A stretch of DNA of 64,000 nt, taken from sequence record ON529852.1; one strand, given 5' to 3'. Positions 32,375-62,597 of this stretch are shown piece by piece (positions within the stretch are counted from its first letter, which is position 1; each line of letters starts with the position of its first letter). The position numbers were made by a program, and so were the translations under genes. Under the pieces are notes generated by a model. The model saw only the letters and a program-made list of their open reading frames with translations, was not told the origin of the DNA and searched no databases.

Positions 32375-32704
32375 CTAGTGCGCGTGGAAGTCCACGCGAC
32401 CGGCGGGCGAGACGTCGAAGTCCCAGACGTTGAAGCGGGCGGCTTCGGCGGCCTCCGCCTCTTCAGCCGCGCGGGCGGCGGCGTAGGCCTCGCCCTCGGC
32501 CTTGTGGGCCGCTTCGGCCTCGGCCAGTTCCGCGCACTCGCGGGCGTAGGCCTCGGGGCAGCCGTAGCCCGTGGGGCGGTCGGGGCGCGCGTCGAGCCAA
32601 GCCCGCGCGGCGGCGACCGTGACGCCCGCCATGACCGGGCGGACGCCGTAGTCGTTGCGGTGCAGGGCGTAGTAGAGGTCGAGGGTTTCCTGATCGGCGG
32701 TCAT
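32375..32704 (-). CDS. hypothetical protein, 109 aa
   Basis: CtrA promoter plus RBS. Confidence 0.75.
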   Translation of the reverse strand: MTADQETLDLYYALHRNDYGVRPVMAGVTVAAARAWLDARPDRPTGYGCPEAYARECAELAEAEAAHKAEGEAYAAARAAEEAEAAEAARFNVWDFDVSPAGRVDFHAH

Positions 32705-32792
32705 CACGTCTCTCCGGCGGGCCAGTCCCGCCACGTCTTCACCCTAGCGGACAGGTATTAACAAGAGGTTAACGCCCGCGCGAAAATCGGGC

Positions 32793-32899
32793 AGGGTCCC
32801 CGGCGATGAATTGGGCAGGGTCCCCGGTCGAAAAATCAGGCAGGGTCCCCGGCGATGAATTGGGCAGGGTCCCCGGTCGAAAAATCAGACAGGGTCCCC
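32793..32899 (+). repeat. AGGGTCCCC array, locus 1 (5 units, 24/25 bp period)
   Basis: Cores at 32793, 32817, 32842, 32866, 32891. Confidence 0.9.
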
Positions 32900-32925
32900 G
32901 TTAACCTTAACGGGCGGGGGCCGCG

Positions 32926-33045
32926 CTAGGCTCCGCGTCCCTTGCGGGAGTAGGAGCCTTTGCCCTTGCGGGCCTTGACCACGCGGACCCGGTAAGCCGG
33001 GGTGGCGAGGGCGGCGGCGGCGGGGTTGCGTTTCGGGGCGGCCAT
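32926..33045 (-). CDS. arfA: ArfA-like alternative ribosome-rescue factor, 39 aa
   Basis: MAAPKRNPAAAALATPAYRVRVVKARKGKGSYSRKGRGA carries the L..P.(F/Y)R.RV.K.+KGKGSY.RK signature; own CtrA promoter and RBS. Confidence 0.8.
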   Translation of the reverse strand: MAAPKRNPAAAALATPAYRVRVVKARKGKGSYSRKGRGA

Positions 33046-33098
33046 GGGTGTCTCCGTGGTTGATGGAAACACCCTAGCCGACAGAAGTTAACAAGAGG

Positions 33099-33545
33099 TT
33101 AAGCGTCGGGATATTGCGCCTGAAGCTTCGCCAGCGTGGCCCGGTCCTCGGCTTCGGCGGCGCGGCGGGCCTCGTCGCGGCGCTTCGCGGCGGCGGTGCG
33201 CTTGGCGTCGCGGGCGGCGGTTTCAGGGGCCAGCCACGCCGGTTCAGCGCCCTCGGCGGCCGGGGCCAGGTATGCCAAGGGGAAAGACACCTCGGCCCAG
33301 TCCTGATAGCCGTAGCTTCCCGAAACGTAGAATTTGACGTCCACGGTTTCAGGCTTGTCGCCGCGCGCCTCGTCCAGTTCCCAGCTTTCGAGATAGCCAT
33401 AGACGACAGTGTCCAGACGTTGGTCCTTGGGCTTCACAGGCTCATCCAGCCGGAAGATGTAAATCGCGCGGGCCAAGTGCTCCAGCGCCTCGTTAAGGGC
33501 GTCGCGCTCGGTCACAAAAGCCTTGAGACGGTCAGGGGTCAGCAT
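33099..33545 (-). CDS. hypothetical protein, 148 aa
   Basis: RBS; stop lies in the next CtrA box. Confidence 0.8.
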   Translation of the reverse strand: MLTPDRLKAFVTERDALNEALEHLARAIYIFRLDEPVKPKDQRLDTVVYGYLESWELDEARGDKPETVDVKFYVSGSYGYQDWAEVSFPLAYLAPAAEGAEPAWLAPETAARDAKRTAAAKRRDEARRAAEAEDRATLAKLQAQYPDA

Positions 33546-45096: not shown

Positions 45097-46104
45097 TCAG
45101 GCCTCGTCTTGGAGGACGACCGTGGCGGCGGTCGTGCGGCTGGCGAACTGCTCGCTCGCGATGCTCCCCTTCAGCCCTTCAAAGGCCATGATGCTCGCCC
45201 TCAGGTCCGGGGCAATGTAGTCGGTCCCCTCAGCCGACGCGTCCGCCTGAAACAGGTCCAGCAGGCGCGCCCGCACCCCGGCGGCGTCGTCCGCATAGAG
45301 GATCGGGGCGCCCTCCTGCTCGGGTTCGATCCGATACGGGCGGCGCTCGCACTGGATGTCGAACGGGCCTTGCCAGTTGCGGACCTCGGCCGGCGCCAGG
45401 GCGGCGTCGGACAGTTCGTCATAGACGCCTTTTTCGCGATCGAAGCAGGCTTCAACCTCGGCCTGCGAGACATAGAAGGCGTGCCGGGCCTCATCCGCCG
45501 CGATAGCGTGGTCCATGATCCAAGCCTGGCCTTGGAAGGTCGCGCGATAGGGCAGGGTCTCGGGCGCCGGCAGGGCGGACGCCGGGGGATCGCGGTCCAT
45601 CCAGTAGCGGTAGAGGGCCGCCCAGGCGCGCGCGCGCTGGCGGTCCCCCGTCGCGGGCAGGTAGGCGTCGTGCAAGGCCTCGGCGGCGGCGGTGCGATCC
45701 GGCGTGTCCGGGTCGGCCTGATCCGCATCAAAGGCGTCGAAGGTCAGCAGGACGGCCTGCGTGTGGCGGGCGGTCCATTCGCCGTCCGGCCCGGCCGCCA
45801 GAACCTCGCGCACTTCGGGAAGGGTCAGGTGGGAAAACTGGGCAGGGTCCCCGACGATGAATTCGGCAGGGTCCCCGACGATGAATTCGGCAGGGTCCCC
45901 GGCCGTCGATTCGCGAGGGTCCCCGATGATGAATTGCGCAGGGTCCCCGGCGATGGATTCGGCAGGGTCCCCCCGCTCGATGCTTTCCGCGATGCCGTAG
46001 AGCCGGCCGATCAGGCCTTGGGCGGCTTCCGGCGTGGGGTTGTGACGCAACGCCAGCACTTGGGCGGCGGCGGCGCGGATCAGGGCGGGATAGGTGATGC
46101 TCAT
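45097..46104 (-). CDS. hypothetical protein, 335 aa, with 6x GDP(A/R/T)xxxx repeat
   Basis: CtrA promoter plus RBS; the repeat is encoded by the AGGGTCCCC array. Confidence 0.8.
   Translation of the reverse strand: MSITYPALIRAAAAQVLALRHNPTPEAAQGLIGRLYGIAESIERGDPAESIAGDPAQFIIGDPRESTAGDPAEFIVGDPAEFIVGDPAQFSHLTLPEVREVLAAGPDGEWTARHTQAVLLTFDAFDADQADPDTPDRTAAAEALHDAYLPATGDRQRARAWAALYRYWMDRDPPASALPAPETLPYRATFQGQAWIMDHAIAADEARHAFYVSQAEVEACFDREKGVYDELSDAALAPAEVRNWQGPFDIQCERRPYRIEPEQEGAPILYADDAAGVRARLLDLFQADASAEGTDYIAPDLRASIMAFEGLKGSIASEQFASRTTAATVVLQDEA
45844..45972 (+). repeat. AGGGTCCCC array, locus 2 (6 units, 24 bp period, inside a CDS)
   Basis: Cores at 45844, 45868, 45892, 45916, 45940, 45964. 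Confidence 0.9.
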
Positions 46105-55962: not shown

Positions 55963-56136
55963 GGGGCGTCTCCCTTGTTCGATGATTCCTTGTAGCGGCG
56001 ATCTCTTAACAAGAGGTTAACGCCGTGACAAGAGCGCGCGGGCGTTAACCTTAACGCGACGTTAAGGTTAACGCCCGGCGAAAGGGAAAGACGCGCCGCC
56101 GGGGGAGACAACCCGGCGGCGCGGCAGGCGGCGGCC

Positions 56137-62184: not shown

Positions 62185-62443
62185 TCACAGGGGCGTCGGT
62201 CGCAAGGCCGGCGCCCTTCGTCGTTGCGACCCGCTCGCGTTAACCTTAACAGAGCGTTAACCTTAATGCCCCTGCCCGCTCCAGGGGTATGACCGGGTAG
62301 GACCAGGTATGACCGGGTCATACCGGCGCGGATTCCCACTGAAAATCACCCAAATTCGCCGAATTGCGCCCGAAATCGCCGGATTTTGACCCTAAAACGC
62401 TGTTTTTGCTCGATTTTTCGGTATTTCAGGCCCGGCGGCGGCC

Positions 62444-62597
62444 GTTAACCTTAACAAGGCGTTAACCTTAACGCGGTTTTGGTTAACGGGGCGTTAACCT
62501 TAACGCCTGGATGGTTAACGCGGTGTTAACCTTAACGCGGTGATGGTTAACGGGCCGTTTACCTTGACGGCGGGAGGGTTAACGGCCCCAGGGTTAA
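62444..62597. repeat. 32-bp-period tandem array of CtrA boxes
   Basis: TTAA-N7-TTAA at 62451, 62483, 62515; near-match at 62547; half-site at 62579. Confidence 0.85.

Follow-up and report, generated by a model that had tools for sequence, protein, structure and literature searches.

The question raised by this locus is whether a reading frame of 39 codons in a Brevundimonas phage encodes a ribosome-rescue factor of the ArfA family, and whether its product could be made free of the control that governs ArfA in Escherichia coli. In canonical arfA, a stem-loop before the stop codon causes termination or RNase III cleavage, and tmRNA tagging leads to destruction of the product of this non-stop message except when tmRNA is saturated; full-length ArfA, which is rare, carries a hydrophobic, unstable tail (PMC8012679). 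The stretch of DNA analyzed here (the window) is 64,000 nucleotides long and forms the final 64 kb of record ON529852.1, the 356-kb genome of Brevundimonas phage vB_BpoS-Kabachok (Dolichocephalovirinae). The host of isolation of Kabachok is Brevundimonas pondensis, an alphaproteobacterium of the Caulobacterales. All positions are those of the window unless stated otherwise, and the features are listed in Table 1.

The open reading frame (ORF) extends from an ATG at 33045 to a TAG at 32926-32928 and comprises 39 codons, with the stop included in its coordinates. No overlapping ORF of any size was present on either strand at 32926-33045 in the program-made ORF list. A longer reading of 48 codons from a GTG at 33072 was rejected; this start lies within the promoter-like element and has no ribosome-binding site, and the ATG is therefore the likely start. 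The 48-codon reading served as the query for the word-indexed protein search described below. A preliminary description, made from the DNA letters alone, had claimed a 39-aa ORF with a KGKGSYxRK signature that ends just after the motif, and the ORF is present exactly as claimed: K27-G-K-G-S-Y-S-R-K35 is followed by just four residues and then TAG. The same description held the ORF to have been missed by the annotation, which is incorrect for the public record, as ON529852.1 annotates it under the name "alternative ribosome-rescue factor." The GenBank entries of the orthologues have similar names in phages Bambus, Papperlapapp, and Domovoi and "hypothetical" in Marchewka, and the paper describing these Brevundimonas phages makes no mention of the gene. 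The identity of the gene is thus already public and not new, and the value added here lies in its architecture and distribution rather than in gene discovery. What is new is the documented architecture, with a real stop, no hairpin, a short N terminus, and no KH motif, together with the observation that the short form is widespread among phages and also occurs in chromosomes of Alphaproteobacteria.

Table 1. Positions of the ArfA-like gene and neighboring sequence features in the window
Feature	Position	Strand	Basis or remark
ArfA-like CDS, 39 aa, KABACHOK_05300	32926..33045	minus	ORF list, Pfam, PDB alignment, conservation, GenBank
Shine-Dalgarno-like GGAGA	33051..33055	minus	5-6 nt upstream of ATG; invariant in five-phage alignment
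33-nt promoter-like element	33070..33102	minus	direct repeat D2; conserved in five sister phages
Promoter-like element of next gene, KABACHOK_05290 (32375-32704)	32740..32772	minus	second D2 copy; ends intergenic space after ArfA-like gene
14-nt near-palindrome just after stop	32899..32912	unstranded	general intergenic element
Tandem 24-25-nt repeats with five GGGGACCCTGCC-type cores	32783..32904	minus	between ArfA-like gene and next promoter-like element

The proposed ArfA-like identity was upheld by profile, structure-database, and alignment evidence. An HMM search with PF03889, the check suggested in the preliminary description, returned a match to the Pfam ArfA family of 38.8 bits against a cut-off of 25.5 (E 6e-10). 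A sequence search of the PDB gave as its sole matches six E. coli ArfA chains from ribosome complexes (E 2e-5 to 1.5e-4), in an ungapped alignment of phage residues 5-37 with ArfA residues 12-44. Profile-profile comparison of the short forms with canonical gammaproteobacterial ArfA by hhalign gave a probability of 98.8% and E 6e-17 over 34 ungapped columns. No NCBIfam model matches the 39-aa protein, and the matches in PHROGs were weak and only to families of unknown function (best E 0.0013). By these profile matches, the 39-aa protein is a member of the ArfA homology family.

The DNA of the gene also has the properties of coding sequence. GC content at third positions is 0.85 in the coding frame and 0.67-0.69 in the other two frames, and it is 0.78-0.91 in the neighboring genes. 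A tblastn search of the phage collection gave no match for either the 39-aa protein or a 79-aa relative, and Kabachok itself was not recovered. Cultured phages were compared by DNA search, and only the five sister phages were found. Residues 1-37 are identical in these phages, and all six changes at the six codons that vary are synonymous; the surrounding DNA shows 89-94% identity among four of the five. This pattern of codon changes indicates that the ArfA-like gene is under purifying selection. It is hardly credible that the reading frame is a chance ORF or a decaying, functionless remnant. The frame is admittedly very short and rich in Ala, Lys, Arg, and Gly, and the BLAST low-complexity filter probably masks the whole query. 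However, the E values of 6e-10 and 6e-17, the gene-like third-position GC, and the exclusively synonymous variation in five phages argue against chance, as do the ribosome-binding site and upstream element that the gene has for itself and the dozens of similarly sized relatives found in metagenomes and viral contigs.

We examined the 3' end of the gene for the features that couple canonical ArfA to tmRNA. The stop codons differ among the sister phages, with TAG after 39 codons in three phages and TGA after 37 codons in two. The in-frame sequence past the stops is unrelated between the TAG and TGA groups and runs through intergenic repeats, and a search for a conserved read-through tail 3' of the stop in the five sister phages revealed none. 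For the hairpin, the folding energy of the 100 nt after the motif was compared with that of shuffled sequences, with canonical arfA as the positive control. Canonical gammaproteobacterial arfA genes (n = 48) gave a median z of -3.91, with 79% of them below -2, cellular short forms (n = 25) gave a median z of 0.22, with 12% below -2, and the five Brevundimonas phages ranged from -0.38 to +0.52, with none below -2. RNA folding of the gene with its 3' flank and of sub-stretches was likewise not significant. The near-palindrome just after the stop was considered as a gene-specific regulatory hairpin and rejected, being one of about 50 general intergenic copies with a folding z of 0.02. E. coli ArfA has a hydrophobic tail and a hairpin before the stop, whereas the phage gene has neither, which indicates that there is no non-stop message and no tmRNA control. 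The preliminary description had called the protein one that lacks the regulatory tail; this holds, given the genuine stop, the lack of a conserved read-through tail, and a z of about 0 versus -3.9, and it extends to the RNA hairpin.

Coupling to tmRNA could nevertheless persist if transcripts were cut or terminated within the last codons, leaving most messages without a stop. In Kabachok, the last ten codons can be folded into a local stem, and the authors of the study on ArfT of Francisella tularensis could not exclude truncation in the last codons of arfT either (PMC6299226). However, the stem in Kabachok folds no better than shuffled sequences do (z of -1.28), Papperlapapp and Domovoi lack its outer arm, and the 100 nt after the motif have a z of about 0 in all five phages compared to -3.9 in canonical genes. 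We consider persistent coupling very improbable. Papperlapapp and Domovoi carry about 190 bp of inserted DNA immediately 3' of the ArfA-like gene (about 1500-1712 of L170 and the matching site of L171); the insertion coincides with the earlier stop that gives a protein of 37 rather than 39 residues.

The preliminary description had also given the gene its own promoter and ribosome-binding site, and both are borne out as predictions at the consensus level, by the 33-nt element and the GGAGA conserved in the sister phages. The element contains the inverted repeat TTAAC-N5-GTTAA, and its 15-nt core TTAACCTCTTGTTAA occurs in 49 copies between 26492 and 62465 (0.02 expected), 46 of them on the minus strand, including those at 33088-33102 and 32758-32772. 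Nearly all of the evaluated copies (41 of 43) are followed by an annotated start codon at a distance of 42-68 nt, and a promoter-like element precedes 41 of the 66 genes of the block. From its position, the 33-nt element probably serves a large class of small phage genes as promoter and perhaps also as operator. The region from 28000 to 64000 contains 66 annotated genes, all but one on the minus strand, and products are named for just two of them, the ArfA-like gene and a DNA primase gene. The ArfA-like gene is one of many small, separately signaled genes in an apparent early or takeover block, in which nearly all other products are hypothetical. Release factors and other translation genes were sought in the Kabachok annotation at record positions 1-50,000 and 320,285-356,285, where the named genes gave only tRNA-Arg, RNase H, and primase.

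The intergenic regions of the block carry further repeats. The near-palindrome CGTTAAGGTTAACG occurs at about 50 sites between 27710 and 62569 compared to 0.11 expected (for example, at 32899-32912, 56043-56073, and 62443-62569), usually a few tens of nucleotides upstream of a promoter-like element. It is sometimes doubled 17 nt apart and is once found in a run of five or six copies. Its half-sites are those of the promoter-like element, which suggests a common DNA-binding protein. The GGGGACCCTGCC core occurs in a second array at 45841-45972; both arrays consist of 24-25-nt repeats in five to six copies each, and the copy number of the array next to the ArfA-like gene differs among the five sister phages. 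These arrays could be iteron-like binding sites.

Relatives of the phage protein were found in both viral and cellular sequences. The word-indexed search gave 16 close relatives with lengths of 36-47 residues plus one of 67 residues, each belonging to PF03889. The inspected contigs of these relatives were phage-like, with rows of small unannotated genes and, in places, Terminase_2 (the small terminase subunit), Tad3, or ArdC. An exhaustive HMMER search of 1.84 billion representatives returned 50 hits at E <= 0.001, most of them of 35-60 residues. A scan of IMG/VR found a relative in at least 186 viral contigs. From 80 loci among these at least 186 matches, 77 viral ORFs were read, with the start codons of relatives assigned mechanically; 39 of the 77 end 3-9 residues after the motif, and others have long, often hydrophobic tails. 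The long hydrophobic tails of L058 and its relatives resemble the regulated bacterial form. Eight of the 77 ORFs (L027, L028, L030, L032, L045, L047, L080, and L083) are fusions of the ArfA-like segment with about 70 further, conserved residues at the C terminus; this extension matched no Pfam family in the two cases scanned (L027 and L028).

Among the best 80 of more than 345 cellular matches, the canonical form with the long N terminus dominates in Gammaproteobacteria, many Pelagibacteraceae (SAR11) genomes have a form of 38-40 residues with a real stop, and no genome of the Caulobacterales is present. Chromosomal short-form loci include L145 (2995-3111), L105 (2995-3114), L132 (2980-3111), and about 25 other Pelagibacteraceae loci. 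In two SAR11 genomes the short form occupies the same place among housekeeping genes that include DapB, an endonuclease III-like gene, a PfkB kinase, and YkuD, and in an uncultured alphaproteobacterium it lies next to PRPP synthetase. The SAR11 and alphaproteobacterial chromosomal forms have the same short N terminus as the phage protein, with 4-6 residues from the motif to the real stop and no excess RNA structure. They differ from the phage gene in being cellular and AT-rich, with 50-65% identity to the phage protein, and in their setting amid housekeeping genes. By these alignments, the short form is a broad subfamily present in both cells and phages. A survey with DNA profiles reported arfA in none of 2,376 alphaproteobacterial genomes (PMC11633108); the short form in SAR11 chromosomes suggests that such surveys undercount ArfA in Alphaproteobacteria. 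Its place among SAR11 housekeeping genes argues that the short form is a working protein.

We then compared the architecture of the phage protein with that of E. coli ArfA (YhdL; ribosome structures 5MGP, 5MDV, 5H5U, 5U4I, and 7OJ0), taking residue equivalences from the PDB alignment, the alignment of relatives, and hhalign. The KGKGSY-R-K motif and a basic C-terminal half are common to both, although the short protein is encoded by a phage that infects an alphaproteobacterium. At the sequence level, the basic C-terminal segment with the KGKGS motif, which in E. coli ArfA occupies the vacant mRNA channel, is present in the phage protein and is followed by G-R, and residues G28, Y32, R34, and V23 are invariant in 44 relatives. 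The aromatic residue at the RF2-docking position is retained in the alignment, with Y18 of the phage protein opposite F25 of ArfA, and the beta-prone residues V20-V23 align to the docking strand Q27-E30, which in E. coli pairs with the sheet of RF2. AlphaFold, with the peptide modeled alone, predicted short helical segments at residues 8-13 and 16-18, with a pLDDT of 77-86 in the first 20 residues and overall values of pLDDT 73 and pTM 0.28. The model thus places a short helix ahead of the strand, as E. coli ArfA does with its helix at 15-24. A Foldseek search with the model gave only two matches, both ArfA chains and not significant (E 0.77 and 1.5).

Three features of canonical ArfA that were tested were absent from the phage protein: the N-terminal segment, the KH motif, and synthesis from a non-stop message. 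E. coli ArfA has about seven more N-terminal residues, and equivalents of its residues 1-7 are missing from the phage protein. The motif begins at residue 27 in the phage protein versus residue 34 in the enterobacterial proteins, and hhalign leaves the canonical N terminus unmatched. Only seven residues precede the conserved Asn, as is the case across the whole short form. In E. coli ArfA, residues 1-14 are ordered only with RF2 in its open, active form, and this ordering is blocked in the inactive A18T variant (PMC8012679). As aligned, the phage protein has only half of this segment. The KH motif (K44-H45), which in E. coli ArfA fills a pocket of the mRNA channel (PMC8012679), is replaced by R37-G38 in the phage protein, and two sister phages end right at R37. 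The phage C terminus corresponds to residue 46 of E. coli ArfA, or to residue 44 in those two phages. A 40-residue truncation of E. coli ArfA is inactive, and 46-48 residues are visible in the ribosome structures (PMC8012679); the phage protein thus ends beyond the inactive limit and at the edge of what is visible. Judging from the alignments, the N-terminal shortening and the missing KH motif were overlooked in the preliminary description.

The shortened N terminus bears on whether the peptide rescues ribosomes or obstructs rescue. It could block or compete with trans-translation by occupying the mRNA channel and the A site and keeping tmRNA-SmpB out, with release-factor activation weak or absent given the shortened N-terminal segment; in that case, phage peptides made on truncated messages would go untagged, or the rescue system of the host would be upset. 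In favor of this view, conservation is complete in the channel-binding half, and the segment linked to RF2 activation is about seven residues shorter. The C terminus of E. coli ArfA overlaps the SmpB site in the channel, and A18T ArfA binds and recruits RF2 without activating it (PMC8012679). However, the strand and aromatic residue that dock the release factor are as strongly conserved as the channel motif, and a pure blocker needs neither. A blocker of rescue would also be hard to explain amid SAR11 housekeeping genes, and ArfT achieves productive rescue with 40 residues (PMC6299226). We therefore regard blocking as unlikely.

The nearest precedent for the design of the phage protein is ArfT, which ends at a stop codon of its own that no terminator or RNase III site precedes and which works with either RF1 or RF2; it is not subject to trans-translation control and is not a back-up for tmRNA (PMC6299226). 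The likeness lies in design and not in sequence, although ArfT also has a basic Gly/Ser-containing motif near its C terminus. ArfT is little similar to ArfA and known only from Francisella, whereas the phage protein is a clear PF03889 member, and use of RF1 or RF2 by ArfT is demonstrated, whereas the partner of the phage protein is assigned by homology only. ArfT was not among the matches of the Pfam, NCBIfam, PDB, or protein searches. Productive rescue with a partner other than that of E. coli ArfA, either RF1 or, as for ArfT, either factor, is conceivable on the ground that the N terminus and helix differ from the canonical form. The size, the own stop, and the freedom from tmRNA-coupled control match ArfT, the composition of the helix region differs from that of canonical ArfA, and the host class is one reported to be without canonical arfA (PMC11633108). 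The sequence, however, is clearly ArfA-like and, from these searches, apparently not ArfT-like, and it keeps the aromatic residue and strand to which E. coli ArfA owes its preference for RF2, making a different partner doubtful in our judgment. ArfA/RF2 pairs are species specific (PMC8012679), and with this specificity and the reported lack of arfA in Alphaproteobacteria, compatibility of the phage protein with a Caulobacterales RF2 is only presumed.

ArfA-like proteins have been reported previously from phages of Alphaproteobacteria. The gene gp30 of pelagiphage HTVC027P bears the ArfA annotation and is transcribed both early and late during infection (PMC12753301), and g10 of Citromicrobium phage vB_CbaS-RXM is ArfA by annotation only (PMC8953757). 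Both were named from a domain match and are likened to the Kabachok protein here by description; neither paper contains a functional test or a remark on the missing regulatory tail. Our literature search turned up neither functional nor structural work on any phage ArfA or short-form protein. Other rescue factors share elements of the mechanism. BrfA of Bacillus subtilis adds a strand to RF2 and fills the mRNA channel, and ArfB probes the empty channel with a basic tail (PMC8012679). However, BrfA is unrelated in sequence to the phage protein and is made from a non-stop message, and ArfB has a GGQ catalytic domain, whereas the 39-residue protein has neither a GGQ nor such a domain.

The reading we favor, and hold to be reasonably probable by analogy with E. 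coli ArfA, is that the phage protein is a short-form ArfA rescue factor that would bind the channel and recruit a class-I release factor, with its production timed by the phage. The peptide would be made during infection from one of about 41 near-identical promoter-like elements in the block of small genes. When a ribosome has reached the 3' end of a truncated message and stalled, the basic C-terminal half of the peptide (K24-R37, with KGKGSY) would enter its vacant mRNA channel, and a class-I release factor, by analogy RF2, would dock on the R19-V23 strand and Y18. Hydrolysis of the peptidyl-tRNA by this factor would then leave the ribosome recyclable. Given the real stop codon and the lack of a hairpin, phage transcription rather than spare tmRNA capacity would determine how much protein is made. 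The benefit may be a faster return of ribosomes to the pool as truncated mRNAs accumulate, with the released peptides left untagged for degradation. For ribosome binding, the release-factor partner, activity, and benefit, we infer from the canonical protein, and our confidence in a specific advantage, be it the recycling of ribosomes as mRNA turns over or an escape from tagging, is lower than in the molecular role. The interpretation in the preliminary description is supported in part, as to family, missing tail, and upstream signals; its further proposals, a constitutively active factor that acts against host shut-off or toxins and could affect cell-cycle timing in Caulobacter, are conjectural.

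ArfA is the textbook rescue factor that is made only when tmRNA fails, and a true stop without a hairpin breaks this coupling. For the phage gene, the data show homology to ArfA, conservation under purifying selection, a genuine stop with no hairpin, and an upstream element that it shares with other genes of the block. For the short form it is notable that purifying selection and a phage promoter-like element come together with relatives in at least 186 viral contigs. A more far-reaching proposal, which we put forward tentatively and consider a minority prospect, is that short-form ArfA constitutes a distinct, widespread class of tmRNA-independent rescue factors, serving as an early takeover tool in many phages, notably those of Alphaproteobacteria; it would speed recycling or block tmRNA tagging and perhaps have a release-factor preference other than that of E. 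coli ArfA. With a factor uncoupled from tmRNA, phages themselves would set the rescue capacity of the cell, which would bear on how infected cells handle truncated messages and on whether phage proteins escape tmRNA tagging.
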